Source: Paramoeba atlantica (lineage: Eukaryota > Protista > Discosea). From it: a stretch of DNA of 64,000 nt. The notes beneath the pieces were generated by a model. It was not told the origin of the DNA. It ran no database searches and saw only the letters and a list, made by a program, of their open reading frames with translations. Position numbers and translations under genes: made by a program. The stretch covers positions 120,469-184,468 of the forward strand of contig CDRNVI010000158.1 of NCBI GenBank assembly GCA_977017575.1, read 5' to 3'. Below are positions 18,701 to 32,900 of the stretch, in pieces; the stretch's first letter is position 1; each line of letters starts with the position of its first letter.

Positions 18701-20951
18701 TAAAATAAGAGAACAATCTTCTTTCAAACTTCTTAGATTTGTTTCATGACAATCATCACTCCCCATTCTCCGAGGGTCAACTTCTGTCTTCTTTTCTTGC
18801 ACAACAATTAAACGAATATCCTCTTGGAGAGTGAGAAGGAGGTACTCGGATCCAATTTTTCGAAAATATGATGTTATTGCTTTCATTAGAGGTCCATTTT
18901 CTCGAAACAAAGTCCCTTAAAAAATCGTTATTGTAAGTTTCAGAAAATGTGTTTTTCAAAAGTTGTGAGGAGCACAAAATAAAAAATTGAAAGAGAGGAA
19001 ATACCCTCATCTGGGCTCTCCTGAATCAATTGAGAAATCATTTCTTTCACCTCATTCCAACTCAACTCTTGTTCCTCTTTGGCGGTTTGTTCATTTTCCC
19101 CCATTTCTCCCTCTCTCCCTCTGTAAGGAACAGGGCTCGTCCAACCTTCCAGAAACAAAATCAAAACAACATTTTTCATGAATTAACCCCCAAAAAGAAA
19201 AAAAAAATACCTTCAAGAACTCTTGTACTTGTCTCATGAGACACTAATCCATCTTTTGCTAATTGGCTGACTCGAATCATTGGTCCTGTTTCAGGAGAGA
19301 TATGATCTCCGTTTTTCTTGGATTCAAATTCATGCATTGAGAGGGTTGGGCTCATATTTTTGGAGGGAGGAGAAGCAGAAGGAACAGCCGCAGCTCCCAA
19401 ATCAATATGTTGGAATTGGTCATCTGGTGAGTCACCTAGAACCAACAAAGCTGCTTCTTTTGGAGAACGTGGTGGAGATTTAAGAGCCATTCTGGCAGTA
19501 ACAGTACTTCCGCATCTTGTTGCTCTTCTTTTTGATGGTGGGAGGCCTTTTGGGAGAGAATTTTGAGGGTCACTTGGGAGTCCGACTGGAGGAGAAACAA
19601 CACCGGTGGGGTCTCTTCGTGGCACTGAACGAGGAGAAACAAGACCAGTTGGAATGGAGTCAGAAGGTTCTCCTTCAACAGGATCCCCTTTTGTGATTGG
19701 AGAAGAAACACCAGTTGGAATCGAGTCAGAGGGTTCTCTGCCAATCGAATCACTTTTTGGGATTGGAGAAATAACACCACGAGGAGAAATCAAGCTTGAG
19801 GGGTCCCCTTTGGGGAGTGGAGGAGAAACAACACCAGTAGGCTCTCTCCTTGAGATACGAGGAGAAATCAAACCAGAGGGTAATGGAAGAGGAGAAATCA
19901 AAGTCAAGGAATCCCCTTTAGGGACTGGAGAAACAACACCACGAGGAGAAATCAAGCTTGAGGGGTCCCCTTTGGGGAGAGAAGGAGAAGCAATCCTAGT
20001 GGGTATTGATAGAGGAGATATCAAACCAGGGGGATCTCTTTTTGGGATTGGAGAAACGGCACCAACATGCTCTTTCTTTGGCGCTTGGTGAGGAGAAAGT
20101 GATCCAAGAGAAATTCCTTTTGGGACAGTTCCTGGAGAGTGGTGGTTGGAATGTTCTTCTCCAAAATGAGATTGTGTTTCGTGGTCTTGATGCATTCTTC
20201 TTTTTGAGGTTTTTTGGCCGGAAGTGAGTTTTGTTGGGTTCCTGGGAGAAAGTCCTGCCATCAGGTTTTTGTCAGGATCATTGTGACCCAATCTTTCTGA
20301 AATTTCTTCAGAACTCTTCATCATTAACGCTCGAGAGAGGTGCTCTCCCTCTGGAGACTCCTCCTCACTCATCACCCTGTCTTGAGTTGGAAAAGGTTCA
20401 GGGTTAATTTTAACTTTGTAGTGAGGGTCAGTCTCTCTGAGAATTCGAATGCTCCCTTTTCTTCGAGAGAAGGGAGCTTCTGACTCATGATCAGATCTGG
20501 GAGAACCAACATCCAGTTTCCCCTCCTCAGGAGATGAGAGAACGCCACCATCTCTTCCTGGAGAACTCACTACTTCAAGGCAAATTGAGTGAAGCTGTGG
20601 AGAAGTGAGTTTTGAAAGTGGAGCAGGAATTTGAGTCATTCTTGGAGAAACCGCTCGAGGAGTTCTTGGAGAAAGAGGCGTTCCTCTTGCCAATGTAGTT
20701 GTAAGTTTTGGTGGGTCTTCCACCCCTAAAGGCCGATCCCATTCGATTGGAGTGTCTGACGAAGGATTTGGGAGATTTCCATGTTGTTGGGGCTGGGGTT
20801 CAGCCAGTCCAGGATTCAAAGGGAGCTTTCGCCTCGGAGAGCCAGGTGGTTTTGTGCGAGGAGGAGGCAGAGTAACCTGAGATTGAGTACGAGCTGGAAG
20901 GATTCTCATTTTACCTCCTGGTCTTGGAGTAATTCCTGATGCTTGACTCAT
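15747..20951 (-). CDS. Protein with two complete RasGAP domains, a long Ser/Pro-rich N-terminus and an acidic tail
   Basis: Domain 1 has LFRENG...VDP...FLFHRFFCPALISP...GLMLVAKVLTNLSN. Domain 2 (spliced exons ~17250-16200) has GTLFRENS...VDP...VGGFLFLRFFCPALLTP...GLILIAK/ILQNVSN. ATG at 20951, stop at 15747-15749. Confidence 0.85.
19560..20100 (-). repeat. Coding imperfect repeats (PKGDxxxLISPRGVVSP / EPSDSIPTGxxSP) in the RasGAP N-terminus
   Basis: PKGDPSSLISPRGV appears twice and EPSDSIPTG appears twice, with many SP dipeptides in the ORF 19176-21122 translation. Confidence 0.75.
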
Positions 20952-21241
20952 CTTCAAAAATAAAGAGCCGCCCCGTCTGAGTGGGCGGTGAGCGAGTAAG
21001 AAGAGAAACAAAGAGCGGTTTGGTTTTAAGGTTCTGCACCCAAAAAAATTTCCAGCGGTCCATTGTTTTTTGTCACCGAGTTCAAATCTTCGAAAAAACT
21101 TTTTTATTATTTTTTTTATCATCGAAAATGAAGGAAAGTTTCACGCAAAGAGCGAATTAAATCAAAAGATTGATATTATTGTTCTTCTTGTTAACAAATA
21201 AATTTTATTTTGGGGTTTTGTTCTTTTTTGTGTTTTTAAAT

Positions 21242-24200
21242 CTACGAGTTATCACAAAGATCAACTTCATAATACTCAAACCACATATCACAAAATAGAT
21301 CCATAAAACCTTCCGTAAAGAGACCCAGATTCTTCCATCCCAATTGCAAATCCTCCGCACCTGTTCCTCCATTCTCAACTCCAAGAGGAGGACCATAATA
21401 ATCCCAAATCAAGTCACTGGCTTCATTATTGAAACCCAACAGACTTACTCCCAAATTTTCTCTTGCTTCGGTCAGATCAGAACCAGCAGACCCACCATTT
21501 TCGATTGAAAGTGGACCAGAATTCCAATAAGCATTATCAAGAGACCACAACAAACCAACGGAACCAATATAAAGATTTTCTTGAGCTTCTGATGGAGTCG
21601 AAGCACCAGTTCCTCCATTTGTCACAGATAATGGAGTCCCAATCCAGAGATCATTGGAGAGATAATCTTCGGTTGCCAGATGTCCCAGAAGAGCGGTGTA
21701 TCTTCGATCAACCGCTTTTGTAGCGTCTGTTCCACCATTGAACATGGACAGTTCATCACCACCGTAATAATAATCCATCACATAATCTAAATAAGCCAAA
21801 TCTCCGAGTTCAAGTTCATCGGTTAAATCATAATAATTGGTCACTCCAGTTCCTCCGTTATTCGTTCCCAAAGGAGGTCCAATCCAAAGATCATCTCCAA
21901 TATAATCATAAGTCGAGAGATATCCAAGATTCAAGTTGTAACGAATATCGAGAACATTGGTTGCTTGAGTTCCACCATTCACAATAGAAAGTTCATCACC
22001 ACCATAATAAAAATCCATCACATAATCTAAGTAAGCCAAATCTCCAAGTTCGAGTTCATCAGTCAAATCATAATAATTGGTTACTCCAGTTCCTCCGTTA
22101 TTCGTTCCCAAAGGAGGACCAATCCAAAGATCATCTCCAATATAATCATAAGTAGAAAGATAGCCAAGATTTAGGTTATAACGAGCATCAAGAACATTCG
22201 AAGCATCAGTTCCTCCATTATATCGGGATAAATCCTCACCAGCATAATAGAAATCCATTACATAATCCAAGTAAGCCAAATCTCCAAGTTCAAGTTCATC
22301 AGTTAAATCATAATAATTAGTTACTCCAGTTCCTCCATTATTGGTTCCCAAAGGAGGACCAATCCAAAGATCATCTCCAATGTAATCATAAGTCGAAAGA
22401 TACCCAAGATTCAAGTTGTACCGAGCATCAAGAATATTCGAAGCCTCAAATCCACCATTTACAATTGAGAGTGGATCACCACCGTAATAGAAATCCATTA
22501 CATAATCTAAGTAAGCCAAATCTCCAAGTTCAAGTTCATCAGTTAAATCATAATAATTGGTTACTCCAGTTCCTCCATTGTTGGTTCCCAAAGGAGGACC
22601 AATCCAAAGGTTATCTCCAATATAATCATACGTTGAGAGATATCCAAGATTCAGATTGTATCGAACATCAAGAACATTGGTTGCTTGAGTTCCACCATTC
22701 ACAATAGAAAGTTCATCACCACCGTAATAATAATCCATTACATAATCCATATAAGCCAAGTCTCCAAGTTCAAGTTCATCAGTCAAGTCATAATAATTGG
22801 TTACTCCAGTTCCTCCGTTATTAACTCCCAAAGGAGGACCAATCCAAAGGTTATCCCCAATGTAATCATACAATGAAAGATATCCAAGTTTTAGGTTGTA
22901 TCGAGCATCAAGAATATTAGAAGAATCAAGACCACCATTGTGGATCGAAAGGGAATCACCACCGTAATAGAAATCCATCACATAATCTAAGTAAGCCAGA
23001 TCACCGAGTTCAAGTTCATCAGTTAAATCATAATATGTAGTGACCCCAGTTCCTCCATTGTTAACACCCAATGGGGGACCAATCCAAAGGTTATCTCCAA
23101 GATAATCATACGTTGAGAGATATCCAAGATTTAGGTTGTAACGAGCATCAAGAATATTGGAAGAATCAAGACCACCATTTTCGATTGAAAGTGAATCACC
23201 ACCATAATAATAATCCATTACATAATCCATATAAGCCAACTCTCCAAGTTCAAGAGCGTCAGTCAAATCATAATAAGAAGAAACACCAGTTCCTCCATTG
23301 TTAACACCCAAAGGAGGACCAATCCAAAGGTTATCCCCAAGATAATCATGTGTCGCAAGATATCCAAGATTCAAGTTGTAACGAGCATCAAGAATATTAG
23401 AAGCCTCAAAACCACCATTTTTGATGGAAAGTGGATCACCACCGTAATAGAAATCCATCACATAATCCAAGTAAGCCAAATCTCCAAGTTCAAGAGCATC
23501 AGTTAAATCATAATAAGTGGTTACTCCAGTTCCTCCGTTGTTGACTCCCAAAGGAGGACCAATCCAAAGGTTATCTCCCAGATAATCATAAGTCGAAAGA
23601 TACCCAAGATTCAAATTGTATCGAGCATCAAGAACATTAGAAGCTTCAAAACCACCATTTTCGATTGAGAGCGGTTCACCACCGTAATAGAAATCCATCA
23701 CATAATCCATGTAAGCCAGATCACCAAGTTCGAGTTCATCAGTTAAATCATAATATGTAGTGACTCCAGTTCCTCCATTATTGACTCCCAAAGGAGGACC
23801 AATCCAAAGATTATCTCCAAGATAATCATATGTTGAAAGATATCCAAGATTCAAATTGTAACGAGCATCAAGAATATTAGAAGCTTCAAGACCACCGTTT
23901 TGGATCGAAAGTGAATCACCACCATAATAATAATCCATTACATAATCCATATAAGCCAACTCTCCAAGTTCAAGTCGATCAGTTAAATCGTAATAAGTGG
24001 TCACTCCAGTTCCTCCATTGCTGACACTCAAAGGAGGACCAATCCAAATGTTATCTCCAAGATAATCATATGTTGAGAGATATCCAAGATTTAGGTTGTA
24101 ACGAGCATCAAGAATATTAGAAGCTTCAAAACCACCATTTTCGATTGAGAGGGGATCACCACCATAATAATAATCCATCACATAATCCATGTAAGCCAAC

Positions 24201-27200
24201 TCTCCAAGTTCAAGTCGATCAGTTAAATCATAATAAGTGGTCACTCCAGTTCCTCCATTACTGACACTCAAAGGAGGTCCAATCCAAAGGTTATCTCCAA
24301 GATAATCATATGTTGAGAGATATCCAAGATTCAAATTGTAACGAGCATCAAGAACATTCGAAGCCTCAAAACCACCATTTTCGATTGAAAGGGGATCACC
24401 ACCGTAATAGAAATCCATCACATAATCCATGTAAGCCAACTCTCCAAGTTCAAGTCGATCAGTTAAATCATAATAAGTGGTCACTCCGGTTCCTCCATTG
24501 CTAACACTCAATGGGGGACCAATCCAAAGGTTATCTCCAAGATAATCATGTGTTGCAAGATACCCAAGATTCAAGTTGTAACGAGCATCAAGAATATTAG
24601 AAGCTTCAAAACCACCATTTTCGATTGAGAGTGGATCACCACCGTAATAGAAATCCATTACGTAATCTAAGTAAGCCAAATCTCCAAGTTCAAGTCGATC
24701 GGTAAGATCAAAATAAGTGCTCACACCAGTCCCACCATTGCTAACACTCAATGGGGGACCAATCCAAAGGTTATCTCCAAGATAATCATGTGTTGAAAGA
24801 TATCCAAGATTCAAGTTGTATCGAGCATCAATCACATTTGATGCCTCGAACCCACCATTTTCGATGCTGAGAGAGTCTCCACTCCATAAAGAATCACCAA
24901 CAACATCTAAAAAGGCAAGTTCTCCTAACTCGAAATTATCAACAACTTGTTCGAAAGTGTTGGCACCAGTACCACCGTTTTCGATTGAAAGAGGAGATCC
25001 AAGCCATTGTTCATTCCCAACGTAATCGAGAGTTGATAAAGCACCAAGAAGGAGATTGTAACGAGCATCAATCACATTTGATGCATCGAACCCACCATTT
25101 TCGATACTAAGAGAATCACCACTCCACAAAGAATCACCAACAACATCTAAAAAGGCAAGTTCTCCCAATTCAAAGTTATCAACAACTTGTTCGAAAGTAT
25201 TGGCACCAGTACCACCGTTTTCGATTGAAAGAGGAGATCCAAGCCATTGTTCATTCCCAACATAATCGAGAGTTGATAAATGACCAAGGAGAAGGTTGTA
25301 ACGAGCATCGATGATATTTGATGCCTCAAACCCACCATTCTCGACACTAAGAGAATCACCACTCCACAAAGAATCTCCAATAACATCTAAAAAGGCAAGT
25401 TCTCCTAACTCGAAATTGTCAACAACTTGTTCGAAAGTGTTGGCTCCAGTACCTCCATTTTCGATTGAAAGAGGAGCTCCAAGCCATTGTCCATTTCCAA
25501 CATAATCGAGAGTTGATAAAGCACCAAGATTCAAATTGTAACGAGCATCAATCACATTGGATGCTTCAAACCCACCATTTTCAATGCTGAGAGAATCACC
25601 ACTCCACAAAGAATCACCAACAACATCTAAAAAGGCAAGTTCTCCCAATTCAAAGTTATCAACAACTTGTTCAAAAGTATTGGCACCAGTTCCTCCATTT
25701 TCAATTGAAAGAGGAGATCCAAGCCATTGTTCATTCCCAACATAGTCAAGAGTTGATAAGGCACCAAGAAGGAGATTGTAACGAGCATCGATAATATTCG
25801 ATGCCTCAAACCCACCATTCTCGACACTAAGAGAATCGCCACCCCATAAAGAATCTCGAACAACATCTAAAAAGGCAAGTTCTCCTAACTCGAAATTGTC
25901 AACAGCCTCTTCAAAAGTGTTGGCTCCAGTTCCTCCATTTTCAATGGAAAGAGGAGCTCCAAGCCATTGGTCATTTCCAACAGCATCGAGAGTTGATAAA
26001 TAACCAAGAAGAAGATTGTAACGAGCATCAATCACATTTGATGCATCGAACCCACCATTTTCGATACTGAGAGAATCACCACTCCATAAAGAATCACCAA
26101 CAACATCTAAAAAGGCAAGTTCTCCCAATTCAAAGTTATCAACAACTTGTTCAAAAGTATTGGCACCAGTTCCTCCATTTTCAATTGAAAGAGGAGATCC
26201 AAGCCATTGTTCATTCCCAACATAATCAAGAGTTGATAAATGACCAAGAAGAAGATTGAAACGAGAATCGATCGCATTGTTTGCTTCGAGACCCCCATTG
26301 ACCATTGTGAGAGAATCACCAGACCAAAGATAGTCAGCAACTCCATCCACAAAAGCCATTTGACCAAGTTCGAAATTATCAACAGCTTGTTCGAGAGTGT
26401 TCGCACCAGTTCCTCCATTTTCAATGGAAAGAGGAGGTCCTAACCATTGTTCATTTCCAACATAATCAAAAGTCGCAAGAGCTCCAAGAAGTAGGTTGTA
26501 ACGAGAATCGATAATATTGGTAGCCTGAACGCCACCATTCTCAATACTCAGAGGCTCCCCACCCCACACAAAATCTGTTGCATAATCGAGATAAGCTAAC
26601 TCTCCAAGCTCAAGAGTATCACCAATCTCTTCAACAGAAGAGGAACCAGTTCCTCCATTCGCAACAGAAAGAGGAGGTCCTATCCAATTATTATCTCCAA
26701 TATAATCATACAGAGCCATTTGACCAAGAAGGAGATTGTAACGAGCATCCATCGCATTACTGGCATCAAGACCACCATCAACAAGAGGGAGGTTCTCTCC
26801 ACTCCAAAGCGCAGGCCGAATGGTATCTTCAAAAGCAAGAGCACCAAGAGCATCAACAGTCACTTGAATACCACTGATTTGCTGATTGAATTCAATTTCA
26901 TAATCGATTCCTTCAACAGAAGAGAGACCAAGACCTAAATTTCGACGAGCAGTTTCTTGTTCTCGACTTCCAGTCCCACCATTTAACAAACCAAGAGCAC
27001 GACCATTCCAATTGGAATCATCGATTGTGTCAAAACGAGCTAATCGACCCAACACGAGGTTTTGGCGTGCTTCTTCAGCTGTTGTTCCTCCAGTTCCACC
27101 ATGATTCAAACCAAGAGCTTTCACACTCCAATCATCATCAGAAACATAGTCTTTGAATCCAATTGTTCCAATTTGCATTGTTTGTTTCAGACCATCGATA

Positions 27201-28756
27201 GTATTTGAACCAGTACCTCCCCATTGGATTGGAAAAGGTAAATCTTCTTCAGTAAGTGATCGATACCCAGAAATGAAGAAATCCAAACGAGGTCCATTTC
27301 GAGGACGAGGAGGCCAGATATCAGGATCACACATTGCAGATTTCTTCCTTCTTAAGTCAGGAACAAAATCACTTCCATCTTCAACAACAATATCTGATGG
27401 ATCAAGATTCGAAATACGACCATCATTATCCAAATAAAAGTATGTATAATCCATTCCATCAGGCATTGTTGTGTGAAAAGGATCTTCAGACCATACATCA
27501 TCAGAACAATAAGGTAACAAAGAACAAGGAATTTCTTTCTTCGTATCTCCATAACTATTGTAAGGATAATACTCTTCAGTTGGGAATTGAATAGGAAACT
27601 CTGGCAAACAACATTGTTTTCTTCCTGTGATGGACTCGACCACTGCTTCGTCTCTGGCCGGGTCAGTTCTGTAATCAGCTCCTTGACGAGAATAACATCC
27701 AAACTCATCGAAAAAAGAGGCTTCTTCCCACCATTGAGGTAACAATGGACACTCGTTTGAAGAACAATCCTTATTCAGAAGACAAGGAATTGGAGTATTC
27801 AGGGGACAAAGGGCTGAAGAGGTACAATCTTCGACAGGTTCGTCAAAATCATAACCCTGATCGGTTGTAACAACCCAACTGTTTCGAAGAATACCATCTT
27901 CAGTAACATAGACAGGTCCTGCTGAAATTTCATTTCCTTCATATTCTTCCCCTCCAATCGTTGCAGTTCCACTACGGTACATCATACGAAGAGATTCTAT
28001 TATTTTGTTTAAAAAAAATTAATTTAACACACCCACACACAAAAGTTTATCTTTTAAAAAAACACCTATTTTTTCAATCGAAAAAAAGTGTGAAAAAAGA
28101 AAAGAAAAGTCGTACCAATGTCGTTTTTAACACTCCTGAGATCACCAGTAAATTGGACTGTGGAAAAAATAATTGTTTAGAGAACCACCAAAGAAAATTG
28201 TCTTCTATTTACGAATAAATAAATAACTTACCATAACGCAAATAATTAATCATTTCATAAGGCGTAATAAATTCAATCGATTCGTGGTAATATTCTTGTT
28301 CAATATCGTTCCTTTCATTTCAAAAAACAAAAATCAATTTTTTTCCAAAAAAATGGAAGAAAAAAAATGTCCAATAAAAAAAAAAAACACTAACCAATTG
28401 GTAATAGAAATTTCAGTGATTGGACAAGCAGCAGGATCATCAGAAACACAAAGAGCCTCATCTTCGGTTGGAAAAGACCAACTTCCAGTTGGAAGATTGA
28501 AAATAGCTTGCGGAATTGATTCATTTGATTCAATTCGATAATAAAACACATTTGTTGGTGCAGCTTCGTCAGGACCATTATCCTGAATTGTTAAGATACC
28601 CGCTTCGAGCCGAGAAACCAACACGAGTACAACAAGAAAAAAACCCAAAAATCGGAATAAAGAAGAAGAAGAATGATCCCAACGACGAAGATCACGTCCA
28701 CCACTTCCACCACCTCCACCACCATCAAAACCCAAACCAAGAAAAGAGAAAACCAT
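21242..28756 (-). CDS. Very large, probably secreted acidic repeat protein with phage tail-fibre-like NGGTG...ARxNLxLG repeats
   Basis: One intronless 2247-codon ORF (21242-27985) lies downstream of short intron-separated 5' exons. The first exon from ATG 28756 has a hydrophobic stretch FLGFFLVVLVLVSRLEA|G. A Cys-rich N-domain precedes 21 tandem 80-aa units and degenerate flanking units. Confidence 0.85.
21638..26677 (-). repeat. Coding tandem array of 21 x 240 bp (80 aa, each made of two related ~40-aa halves)
   Basis: Counted in the translation from PPLSVANGGTG (26677) to the codon before TPLSVTNGG (21637). The length is 5040 bp = 21 x 240, with no indels. Confidence 0.93.
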
Positions 28757-28992
28757 TTCTCTTCGCCAAAAAAGAAAACCACACACACCCAAAAAATCAA
28801 ACGTGAACCACCACCAACCAAGAAACCGAAAAACAACCGCCCGCAAAACGACAAAAAGGGGGCCATTTAAATAATGCCAAATTAGAGTAATTTTCACTCA
28901 GCTAAAATAGGGTTCTTTTTTTGAAAATTTTAGGTGTTTTGGTTGTCCTTTTTTCCAAACGACACCCTTCATTTTTTTTGTTTTTTTTTTTT

Positions 28993-29020
28993 CAAAACCA
29001 AGAGTGCACTCTTGGTTTTG
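28993..29020. repeat. Perfect 28-bp palindrome
   Basis: caaaaccaagagtg|cactcttggttttg is its own reverse complement. Confidence 0.92.
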
Positions 29021-29131
29021 TGTTTTTTTTGTGATGAACTCAAAAAATCTTCATTTTTATCTTTTTTCGAAAAATTCCTTGAAAAATCAAATTCTTTTGC
29101 AAAATCATGAAAATCATCTTCAGAAAATCCA

Positions 29132-29366
29132 CACTCCGCCCAAAATGCCCAAAAGATTTTTGAAATGGTCTTTGACCCCAATTGTTTGAACACTCTTTTA
29201 GATCTGGAGGAAAACACAACTTGAAATTCCGACCAACAATTTTGGTGACGTGTTTTTTTTTTCAAGGTTGTGTTTTCTTCCAGATCAAAAAGAGTGCCCA
29301 AACAATTGGGGTCAAACGACACCAAGGACCATTTCGAAAATCTTTTGGGCATTTTGGGCGTAGTGC
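29132..29366. repeat. Long imperfect inverted repeat (fold-back, ~95-105 bp arms, ~30 nt loop); MITE-like or hairpin-RNA-like
   Basis: Left arm cgcccaaaatgcccaaaagatttttgaaatggtc...gaaaacacaacttgaaa pairs with right arm ttcaaggttgtgttttc...gaaaatcttttgggcattttgggcg, with a few mismatches and one ~11-bp indel. Confidence 0.88.
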
Positions 29367-29394
29367 CAATTGAAAAAAGAAACCGAAAGAAGAA

Positions 29395-29735
29395 AAAAAA
29401 AAATGAAAATTTTTTTTCATGATTGGAGAAAACAAGGAGTTACCGGTGCCTTTTTGTGACCCTTTGCCCTTCGACGATTCGAAAAAGGCGATTAGGAACA
29501 CAGTTCGCCTTTTGGAATCAAACACCACAATTGGTCCTATTTCTCGGCGTCCTGTGTTAAAAAAAAAATGAAATTTTTTCCATTTTTTTTTTGAAAACAA
29601 GGCGTTACAGGTGCCTTTTTGTGCCCCTTTGCCCTTCGACGATTCGAAAAAGAGGAAAAGGAACACAGTTCGCCTTTTGGAATCAAACACCACAATTGGT
29701 CCTATTTCTCTCGGCGTCCTTTGTTGAAAAAAAAC
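29395..29735. repeat. Non-coding direct repeat, 2 copies, period 165 bp
   Basis: gaaaacaagg occurs at 29428 and 29593, each followed by near-identical gtgcctttttgtg...ggaacacagttcgccttttggaatcaaacaccacaattggtcctatttctc. Confidence 0.88.
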
Positions 29736-29904
29736 CGTTACTTATCGGAATCAAATAAGTTATCAAAAGTGCCACTACTTACTTAAATAAACTGTCATAA
29801 ATCCGAGCCAGATTTTTATACGCGTGGATAAATGACGAATTTTTGGCCCATCATTTTTTGGGTTTTTTTTCGTTTGCGGTTCCTTTCTTGTTGCGTCAGA
29901 GAAA

Positions 29905-32900
29905 ATGGCTTCTGTTTCCGAAACAGCTGCTAACGGGGAAAGGATCCAAGAGCTCTTCCCTGAAGAAAATGTAGGGCATCACTTCTTACAAATCTTCTAC
30001 CAGGCAGAAACCCTTCCTCATTTACTTTTGGAACTTGTCAAACACTATCCCGAGTTTCCGTACGCTCAAATCGTCGATAAACACGGGCATGATATCGCCT
30101 CTTCAAAACGAACCATCGCTCAAATCGCACATCAGGCTGTGGCTGTAGTCGAAGAACTTCAACGACAAAAAGTGAAAAGGGGAGATCGGGTGATGTTGGT
30201 CTTCTTTCCTTCTGTTGAGTTTCTCGTTGCTCTTTGGGCTTGTTTCATCGGAGGGTTCGTGGCTGTGACTGTTCCTCCACCCATCCGCCTCACCATTGAT
30301 CTGGTGAACTTTAATTCGTATGTTTCAAAAGCAGGAGCGAAGGTTGCTTTATCTCACAACGCTTATTTCAACTTTTCCACTTTTGGGTCCATTACAGATA
30401 CGATTAGTAATTTTATCTGGTCTGGTTCGAAGGTGAAGTGGCCAGCTTTCCTGGATTGGGTTTACATCGACAAAGTGTGTCAAGCAGCTTCAATCATTCC
30501 TCCTCATGATCATCTGATCGAAAGTGTTCAACAGTATGTCCAGCAAATCTCAAGAGACAGTTTAGCATACATGCAATTAACAAGCGGGAGCACTTCTCAG
30601 CCAAAGATGGTGATGATTCCCCACGACTCTGCAATCGATAATGTGATTATGATCACAAAGAGTAACATTCCTGGATTCATCAATTCACAATTGGATTACG
30701 TCAATTACACAAAGCAGAATTGCCCTTGGGTTCCTCGTAAGTTTGATTGGGTTCCAAAGAGACCACAGATTCCAGAGTATCATCGTTCGACAGTTTTATG
30801 GCCTCCACACTTCCATGATCTTTTTATCTTTCATCTCAGTTTAGCTGTTTCGATTTGTACGACCATCCGTTTGATGTCACCAGCAGACTTTATCGCGAAA
30901 CCGATGCTCTGGATGGAAGTTTGTAAACGAACGAACGCTACGCTGACGTGTACTCCGAATTTTGGGTTTGATTATCTAATTTCAAAATCAACGGAAAAAG
31001 AAAGGAAAGAATTTCTTGATTCTTGTTCTCCATCTTGGAAACTGTGTATCGCTCAAGGTGGTGAGCCAGTGAAAGACACTACCCTGAAAAACTTTTATAA
31101 AGCGTTCCCCGTCTTCAATGATCATTCTGTTTGGAATTCTTATGGAATGGCAGAAGCTGTCGCTGGAGTATCGGTTATGAAATTGGATAAACCGTTCTCA
31201 AGGTTGCAAGTTTCACAGAAAGGGCTTACCACAACAGGACAAAAAATCGCGTATGCCCGCGAAGGTGATCCTAACTCTCGTCCTTGTTACTCGTGTGGGC
31301 TCACTCGTTCGATTGTGCGACCTGGAGTTCCAGATAGTTACATCATTATTGTTGATCCTGATACTCTTGAAGAACTCCCCTTCCAACATATCGGAGAAGT
31401 TTGGGTCACTAGTTATACCTTTGGATCCGGATATTGGGGTTGGGATGAAGCTGATTCTGCACAAGTCTTTGGAGCAGTTCCGAAGTTGTGTCGTACCGTC
31501 CAAGATCGAAAGTATTTACGAACAGGTGACAGAGGTTTTGTTGATAATGGTCATGTTTATATCATTGGGAGGTATAAGAGTACACTCATTTTGCGAGGAA
31601 AATGTTTTGAACCAAGCGATATTGAATATTCTTTATGGAATAGCCATGATAGTCTTCGACCAGGTTGTACTGTCGCGCTATCTGTTCCCAATGATGCAAC
31701 AGGAACTGATGATCTTGTTTTAGTCACTGAGGTAAAAATCTCTTTTTTTTTTTTGAATCTCTCTCTCTTCTTCTTCTTATTTCTCTTTTTCCGACTGCTT
31801 TTTTTTTTCTTTCTTTTTTTTTTTGTCTTTGTGTGTGTCAGTTTTTTCTCTTTTTCTCTACTTTTTTTTTCACACCATTTTCTCCTCCAAAGGTTCGGGA
31901 TGAATCTCTTGATGCAGAAATTTTTGAAAAGATTGCTTTTCAAATGAGAGAGTCTCTTGGTTTTTCGTTTGGTCTTCTCTGTGCAGAGATTCTCTTTTAT
32001 GGTCCGAAAAAGGGAGTCTTGAAAACAACATCAGGAAAACCACGCCGAAACTTAATCCTTCAAAATTACGTTGAAAAGGCTTCTGAACCTCTCTATACTT
32101 CAAAATCTGATGCGCTCGACCTCCTCCCAATGGCTGAACTCGAAGAACAAGATCAGAGCCTCCCAGCTGATGCAGTTGAGAAAATCAAGAAAATGATGGA
32201 ACAACTGAGGCGAGGGACTAATGAAGAAGAAGAAGGAGAAGCCCAAAACGGGTATGCTGATCTTTTAGATGAGCCTCTCTCGAACTTCTCTGTAAGTTCG
32301 CAAGATATGATTCGAATTCAATCGATGATTCACACTGAATTTAAAGTTTATATCCCATCGGGAGTTCTTTTGCAAGTTGACCCCAATATGAGTGTTCGCC
32401 ACCTCTTCCTCGCTTGTGTCTTTAATAAGCCCTCCCCTACTTCCCCTACTTCCCCTACTTCCTCTGCCACCACACCCCCAAAACGAGTTTCTCGCTCTCC
32501 TCCTTCCTTCTCCGACACTCCTAATACCCCAACCTATGCTAACCAGCCTACCTTTACTTCTTCCTTTTCTTATTCTTCTCCTAAAGTTTCACCTCGAGCT
32601 TCACCCAAAAACTCTCCCGTAGCCCGAAGCTACGTCTCACCAAAAAGGAGCGTTGGGTCGACTTCCTCTCTAAGACGGGGCACCTCCCAGACTCCAGATC
32701 CTCAGGTACCCTCTGCAGGATCTCCAACCTCTCCCCCAAGTACCCCTCCTCGACAACAAGATCGACAACCTCGAACTGTGGGTACCAGTACCGGTTTTAT
32801 TCCAACTTCACCAATTCTCGGCCGTCTGAGCCGGAGCTCCACCTCCCAGGAGTCACTTTCAAGAGTTAAGTCCCCCGGAAGAAATTCACCAGCAAAGGTA

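Follow-up and report, generated by a model that had tools for sequence, protein, structure and literature searches.

A giant spliced gene of Paramoeba atlantica carrying an amplified array of units related to phage tail-fibre repeats

Why would an amoeba carry a gene for a giant protein built from repeats that resemble those of bacteriophage tail fibres? The question is raised by a stretch of 64,000 nucleotides of Paramoeba atlantica DNA (GenBank assembly GCA_977017575.1, contig CDRNVI010000158.1, positions 120,469 to 184,468 of the forward strand), hereafter called the window. On its minus strand, at 28756-21242, lies a gene of four exons whose product carries 48 copies of a 40-residue unit. 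An earlier note on this DNA, made from the sequence letters and a list of open reading frames (ORFs), had described this gene as coding for a secreted protein in which a viral fibre module had been domesticated and expanded. On balance we consider it probable that the gene specifies an exported amoeba protein made of horizontally acquired fibre-shaft units, which were amplified and which probably form a trimeric rod at the cell surface. Positions given below are those of the window, and all features of the gene are on the minus strand.

Gene structure, splicing and the repeat array

Most of the gene is an intron-free ORF of 2,247 codons (21242-27985), which is preceded by short exons. According to translation and hydropathy, exon 1 (28395..28756) holds the start codon and the codons for a 32-aa Gly/Arg-rich N-region, a hydrophobic stretch, LFRFLGFFLVVLVLVS, the sequence RLEA|G that follows it and the start of an N-terminal domain. 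Exons 2 (28232..28311) and 3 (28116..28157) measure 80 and 42 nt, respectively, and exon 4 (21242..27996; 6,755 nt, intron-free) encodes the remainder of the N-domain, all the repeats, the C-terminal tail and the stop codon (21242-21244). The exons are separated by introns of 83 nt (intron 1, 28312..28394), 74 nt (intron 2, 28158..28231) and 119 nt (intron 3, 27997..28115), each bounded by GT..AG. Once spliced, the exons total 7,239 nt and read in frame to a single stop, giving a protein of 2,412 aa. An AATAAA motif, a candidate poly(A) signal, begins 34 nt past the stop codon (21204..21209).

Four public sequencing runs (X1, X2, X3 and X5) were compared with the region 26600-29400, which includes the 5' 2.8 kb of the gene. 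In run X1, dating from 2015 and comprising 17 Mb of contigs, of a library type that is not on record and that we guess to be RNA, a single contig of 1,669 nt matched with 0 mismatches and skipped exactly all three introns. This indicates that splicing connects the 5' exons with the 6.7-kb exon, as the earlier note had proposed from the signal-like first exon and the short introns, and that the exon joins it placed within 28756-27985 are correct. Contigs of X1 cover 28394-28709 of the exon 1 region and stop there, leaving the first 47 nt after the ATG uncovered; within 26600-29400 they cover neither the introns nor the DNA upstream of ~28762, and the intron-skipping contig ends at the start of the high-identity array. 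Runs X2, X3 and X5 (2023-24), on the other hand, cover the introns and intergenic DNA in a genomic-like pattern. We conclude that this is a real, expressed and spliced nuclear gene of the amoeba, its expression being taken from X1 on the guess that this run is RNA.

The gene belongs to a eukaryote genome. Its neighbours are a calpain gene, a gene with a RasGAP domain and one for an AMP-binding enzyme. The G+C content (GC) is uniform over the window and that of third codon positions (GC3) is 0.24 in the gene, close to the 0.30-0.40 of the neighbours. An ortholog with the same exon structure is present on a metagenome-assembled contig (L002), with an identity to the window of 95% in exon 4 and of 83-86% in the 5' exons and introns; over 476 codons the nonsynonymous divergence (dN) is 0.020 and the synonymous divergence (dS) 0.153.

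The product consists, in order, of the N-region, the hydrophobic stretch, an acidic domain with 13 Cys, the 48 units and a short tail with 2 Cys. A motif scan located 48 units centred on [N/D/H]GG in the ORF, and 45 of the 47 spacings between them are exactly 40 aa, the two exceptions being a 68-aa spacer after unit 2 and a 42-aa step before the last unit. In between, 45 consecutive units follow one another in perfect register and with no indel (NGG at ORF residues 403 to 2163). Tandem Repeats Finder (TRF) reported a 240-nt period with 82-87% matches over 21755-26575, and no further copy of the motif was found elsewhere in the 64-kb window.

The array opens with two canonical units, NHGGTGGTTAEEARQNLVLG and LNGGTGSREQETARRNLGLG, which together with the irregular 68-aa spacer occupy 26804..27127 and gave the best stretches in the comparison with the phage protein families of PHROG. 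The regular array, seen by both the motif scan and TRF, follows at 21404..26803, with two kinds of unit in alternation. The A-type unit reads NGGFEASN..DARYNLNLG and has the pattern ..LSIENGGFEASN.LDARYNLNLGYLST.DY.GD..W.G, while the B-type unit, NGGTG.....LELGELAY with the pattern PPLS..NGGTG.......D..ELGELAY.DYV.D...GG, has lost the AR.NL part. Their alternation produces super-units of 80 aa that fall into two sub-arrays: six type I super-units (24884..26323), with a mutual nucleotide identity of 83-93%, and thirteen Tyr-rich type II super-units (21764..24883), which are 74-95% identical to one another and ~62% to type I. Tyr makes up ~15% of the type II units. The mean dN/dS among units is 0.16 at a dS of ~0.4-0.5, which indicates that the copies are not very young and that they are held by purifying selection.

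Cys residues, 15 in total, are confined to the ends: 13 lie at residues 103-384 and two at residues 2397 and 2409, with none in the array. The spliced product is rich in Gly (13.2%), Asp (9.7%), Tyr (7.6%), Glu (6.1%) and Trp (1.9%). Asp and Glu together reach 15.8% as against 3.1% for Lys and Arg, giving a net charge of ~-300, and there is one N-x-S/T sequon. The part of the Cys-rich acidic N-domain encoded in exon 4 (27128..27996) has a dN/dS of ~0.13 relative to the ortholog, and apart from this ortholog neither Pfam nor a look-alike search of the ESM Atlas returned a relative of the domain. At the other end, 21245..21403 encodes the last, degenerate unit (reached by the 42-aa spacing) and an acidic C-terminal tail of ~40 aa with its two Cys; since this C-terminus is not hydrophobic, it carries no glycosylphosphatidylinositol (GPI) or transmembrane signal. 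The features read earlier from the letters, namely more than 40 half-repeats, richness in D, E, Y, W and G, and Cys-containing ends on either side of the array, were thus all recovered.

Relatives of the 40-residue unit

The unit is related to phage tail-fibre repeats. The best matches among the PHROG families were phrog_5481 (tail fiber, 1.6e-59), phrog_21510 (2.2e-50) and phrog_1591 (tail fiber, 8.8e-33), followed by eleven further families; 12321 and 10316 are among the tail-fibre families that match the unit. Scans of the whole protein with Pfam and NCBIfam gave no meaningful match and no model for the unit, and outside the repeats there was no match in PHROG or Pfam. We also ran an exhaustive HMMER search with ORF residues 281-600 against 1.84 billion representatives. 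This search led to the identification of 787 relatives at E<=1e-3, of which 159 reached E<=1e-10 and 13 reached E<=1e-30, most of them 300-600 aa long. All ten of the top relatives tested against PHROG matched tail-fibre families, some with T7-like N-terminal adaptors, and one relative (P0011) is encoded in a structural cluster of phage-like character, directly downstream of the SU10-type genes for portal and adaptor. In addition, tblastn matched tail fibre genes in the ~70-77-kb genomes of E. coli phages (identity 30-38%), and IMG/VR yielded 22 related loci, a jumbo-phage tail fibre among them. Look-alikes of the repeats in the ESM Atlas came mostly from tailed-phage clusters, at scores <0.9 that make them leads only.

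Among the top 150 relatives the modal GGTG spacing is 40 aa (225 counts), the next being 88 aa (27 counts). In our alignment (A3) the amoeba units match phage and bacterial units without a gap across the full 40 aa, with the conserved positions L..NGG(T)G ... (A)R.NL.LG.L ... W.G. Together these observations identify the unit as an old module of fixed length. Its copy number differs, since phage and bacterial relatives typically have 3-8 consecutive units as against 48 in the amoeba gene. Profile matches in the PDB (E<=0.03) were fibres only: SU10 gp12 (1.4e-15 and 6e-17), the T5 L-shaped fibre (8HQZ, 5e-4), the R1 and R2 pyocin fibres (1e-3 to 0.03), the short tail fibre gp92 (9ZD7) and gp47 (8VBX). 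A PDB search with a single sequence returned nothing, and matches were obtained with profiles alone. The GG.G motifs and the acidity also brought to mind an RTX-like calcium beta-roll, which was ruled out by the period of 40 aa instead of 9 and by the homology to fibre shafts. Judged by these alignments and profiles, the unit is homologous to the phage tail-fibre unit, and this relationship, to which the earlier note had pointed for phage fibres, extends over phage and bacterial proteins alike.

Three groups of known proteins are instructive for comparison. The tail fibres of SU10 (gp12, 7Z47) and of Kuravirus phages (XT32, Bas86, Bas89, Bas94) contain tandem LSI.GGTGA..A..AR.NLGLG units, as the amoeba protein does. 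They have only 2-8 of them, dock to the virion by their N-terminus and have a distal partner that binds the receptor, whereas the amoeba protein has 48, is encoded with introns and has a predicted export signal and no phage-type terminal domains. In the SU10 gp12 structure the first 90 residues alone were built and the unit region is unresolved (PMC9509320). The only solved view of the unit is that of the R1 and R2 pyocin fibres (6CL5, 6CL6, 6CT8), in which one copy, LPLARGGLGANTAAGARNNIGAG...W (~residues 573-608 by construct numbering), lies where the Shaft ends distally and joins the tip domain. Three extensively interdigitated chains make up this Shaft, each a series of very short helices with a sharp turn after every helix; ~70 residues cover ~93 Å, and the trimer is resistant to SDS (PMC6116203). 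In the pyocins this single unit is flanked by knob and lectin-like domains and closely preceded by an iron-binding HxH site; the His motif, the knobs and the lectin tip are all absent from the amoeba array.

The unit is also found in giant secreted proteins of bacteria. These include the YD/RHS protein P0002, P0005, which is sorted by the type IX secretion system (T9SS), the Peptidase_S74 proteins P0006 and P0028, and P0010, of 2,923 aa, which adjoins FG-GAP giants. They contain 3-20 units among other domains and, unlike the amoeba gene, are intronless and lie on contigs of prokaryotic character. Finally, two eukaryote-like proteins from metagenomes, P0001 (2,120 aa) and P0008 (795 aa), resemble the amoeba protein in having an N-terminal signal followed by many units of ~40 aa, and P0008 shares the NWIG.PL signature with it; the units of both are less regular. 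Both end in a common globular domain, which the amoeba protein lacks, followed by a coiled coil. This domain (P0001:1760-2120, P0008:560-795; ..DFAEWLP...GEVVGV...GKVPVKVRGAV..GD.L.PSG...EVIGTAWE..) shows a weak, sub-threshold similarity (E 0.0024) to the intramolecular-chaperone domain of Peptidase_G2, and it may be a trimerisation or self-cleaving module. The amoeba gene itself, with its eukaryotic neighbours and spliceosomal introns, lies outside any phage or prophage structural module.

We then modelled the unit with AlphaFold2. A monomer of ORF residues 281-600, modelled with 34 homolog pieces, reached a predicted local distance difference test (pLDDT) score of 59, and a monomer of three type II super-units, modelled from its self-alignment and homologs, a pLDDT of 37. 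Both models show three short helices per 40-aa unit and no monomeric solenoid. With the first model, the only rows returned by Foldseek were three pyocin fibre entries, at non-significant E values of 7-9. The poor monomer models would fit an obligate intertwined trimer and are no proof of one. Because of the low confidence of the models, a rigid trimeric filament is a prediction from homology only.

Origin of the array and competing readings

The expanded units come closest to P0002, an RHS/YD-shell protein of 1,741 aa. Its gene (L028:22-5247) lies on a contig of 5.6 kb with a GC of 61%, a GC3 of 0.76 and no poly(A)-like end, and P0002 is probably bacterial. At residues ~760-917, between YD repeats, P0002 contains an A-B-A block that is 54-57% identical to the type II units and is an unusual insertion for an Rhs protein. 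It has in common with the amoeba protein both the A/B alternation and the signature W.GPPLS.ENGGTG. When the units of the two proteins are compared, A pairs with A (0.52 versus 0.46) and B with B (0.58 versus 0.40), which indicates that the 80-aa A-B pair predates the amplification of the array in the amoeba. If P0002 is bacterial as we think, the module may have come from a bacterium instead of a phage.

Two of the relatives look eukaryotic. P0001 has a signal peptide, ~40 units, a GC3 of 0.87, AT-rich flanks and a neighbour with a Myb domain, while P0008, with its N-terminal signal, is encoded on a single-gene contig of 2.5 kb with an A-rich 3' end. With these two relatives, a restriction of such proteins to the amoeba lineage is doubtful. 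Horizontal acquisition is nevertheless the most economical and most likely reading of the sequences, because an enormous diversity of prokaryotic and phage members stands against a handful of eukaryote-like ones. A route through giant viruses was considered and discarded: the sole large viral contig with a relative (L010, 286 kb) carries a phage-type tail fibre and gave no sign of an intermediate. Of the earlier proposal of an acquired and expanded viral module, the expansion holds (48 units versus 3-8 in relatives). A viral donor is uncertain, as the unit is common in bacterial giants and P0002 is closest.

How firmly the source can be named is the point on which the most serious rival differs. 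It accepts the same protein and derives the module not from a virus but from a bacterial protein, either of the cell surface or a polymorphic toxin (YD/RHS-type), so that "domesticated viral fibre" would be a mislabel. We regard this as quite possible, if short of probable: the identity, the A-B-A alternation and the GC-rich contig of P0002 all speak for it, as does the presence of the 40-aa unit in T9SS-sorted and Peptidase_S74 proteins and in the giant beside FG-GAP giants. Yet most relatives are of tail-fibre size and have PHROG tail-fibre matches or phage contexts, the bacterial origin of P0002 is only probable, and the bacterial copies may themselves derive from prophages. Another reading, an old, vertically inherited eukaryotic family whose likeness to phage proteins is due to reverse transfer or to deep common ancestry, could draw on the signal peptide, Myb-domain neighbour and AT-rich flanks of P0001 and on the A-rich 3' end of P0008. 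It is very unlikely given that phage and bacterial members, with 787 representatives, are vastly more numerous and diverse and that no curated eukaryotic family matches the unit. That the repeats are contaminating phage or bacterial DNA, or an artefact of assembly, is effectively refuted. The phage-like repeat itself is all that would suggest contamination, and it is met by the removal of three spliceosomal introns in an independent run (X1), by eukaryotic flanking genes, host-like composition and an ortholog with the same exon structure; the exact copy number of the array could still be mis-assembled.

A further alternative concerns the protein and not its source. The product might form no phage-like trimer and act as a monomeric or otherwise assembled matrix protein, extended, acidic and Tyr-rich, for example in a scale or wall with Tyr cross-links or cation bridges. 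The absence of a chaperone or trimerisation domain, the Tyr content of the type II units, the net charge and the failure of AlphaFold to find a confident fold would all suit such a protein. Every structurally known homolog of the unit, however, is part of a trimeric fibre, and a defined fold is suggested by the strict 40-aa register and the dN/dS of 0.16. We consider the matrix alternative unlikely.

The reading that we prefer, an exported trimeric rod of acquired and amplified shaft units, has several points against it. Export and surface location are deduced from the sequence, and the N-region that precedes the hydrophobic stretch is, at 32 aa, of unusual length. That run X1 is RNA is a guess, and the check for transcript cover spanned 26600-28709. 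The protein is without the phage-type N-terminal attachment domain and without the C-terminal chaperone-like domain of phage fibres, P0001 and P0008. The AlphaFold models are of monomers, and their low confidence could come from thin alignments alone. Lastly, the direction of transfer and the donor are proposals, units of 40 aa being too short for a rooted tree.

Surroundings, export and possible role

The sequences around the gene and in its ortholog show some features of their own. The giant gene is divergent from the AMP-binding (FAAL-like) gene (29905-31947, plus strand), from which it is separated by 1.15 kb (28757-29904), and the two might share a promoter region. On the other side, ~120 nt past its stop, a 648-aa Pro/Ser-rich ORF (19176-21122, minus strand) contains repeated SP..G(V)VSPP-like motifs; it has no Pfam match and is unrelated to the neighbour of P0001. 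In the ortholog, a 1-nt deletion relative to the window (L002:8520-8540, ~26555 of the window) ends the ORF after the first units (P0007, 499 aa), which may reflect either a mistake of assembly in a G-run or a genuine frameshift of that strain. At 27602-27999, runs X3 and X5 contain, beside contigs identical to the window, variant contigs that differ at 42 of 398 nt (~10%). These match sequence of the L002 type and suggest that those samples include a second strain, an allele or a close species.

Export would depend on the hydrophobic stretch encoded in exon 1, which occupies residues 33-48 (16 aa) and is the sole hydrophobic segment of the protein; the only hydropathy peak of the spliced product is at residues 30-57. 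The ortholog keeps a 16-residue hydrophobic stretch and a small-residue, cleavage-like site, after which it continues, as the amoeba protein does, with ILTIQDN. Two readings of the stretch are possible, a signal peptide whose N-region is unusually long and a type-II signal anchor, and under either the array would probably sit outside the cytoplasm. The N-region (residues 1-32) is encoded by a GGT/GGA-rich tract (28680-28740, minus strand) that yields GGGGGGSGG. Its GF.FDGGGG motif is kept in the ortholog although the surrounding residues differ, and this region could be a cytosolic tail.

In the preferred reading, the signal peptide or signal anchor would route the acidic 2,412-aa protein into the secretory pathway. 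Horizontal transfer from a bacterium or phage would have brought in the module, which by then was an 80-aa A-B pair. Unequal crossing-over in the amoeba would have amplified this pair into the two sub-arrays, after which purifying selection would have kept the units, their length unchanged. By analogy with the R-pyocin shaft, three chains may intertwine as a thin rod of short helix-plus-turn elements. Such a rod would be ~0.25 µm long (1,920 residues at ~1.3 Å per residue, the pyocin rise being assumed), its membrane-proximal end formed by the Cys-rich N-domain and its distal end by the small tail with the two Cys. The product may serve as a filament of the cell coat or as an adhesin. The predicted export signal, the extreme acidity, the high Tyr content, the confinement of Cys to the ends, the absence of a C-terminal anchor and the strict unit length would suit either a long-reach adhesin or a structural filament at the surface.

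The repeat is a known, though uncurated, fibre building block that appears here in a new host, at a new scale and in a new architecture. Our literature searches returned no description of giant, spliced, exported eukaryotic proteins built from the 40-aa unit. With its perfectly regular array, the protein would lend itself well to solving the structure of this unit, which is widespread in tail fibres. If the rods are trimeric, a eukaryote would have co-opted a viral or bacterial fibre module and amplified it ~six-fold or more beyond its use in phages. We know of no account of the coat protein composition of scaled Paramoeba species or of related amoebae with filamentous glycocalyces, and the protein is a concrete candidate for a component of an amoebozoan surface coat. 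That giant proteins made of an amplified phage- or bacterium-derived shaft unit build coat elements of amoebae, such as glycocalyx filaments or microscales, is a tentative idea, on the doubtful side of possible. If true, an amoebozoan cell coat would for the first time be identified in molecular terms, and a prokaryotic or viral trimeric fibre module would have been turned into a structural material of eukaryotes, with the number of copies setting its length.

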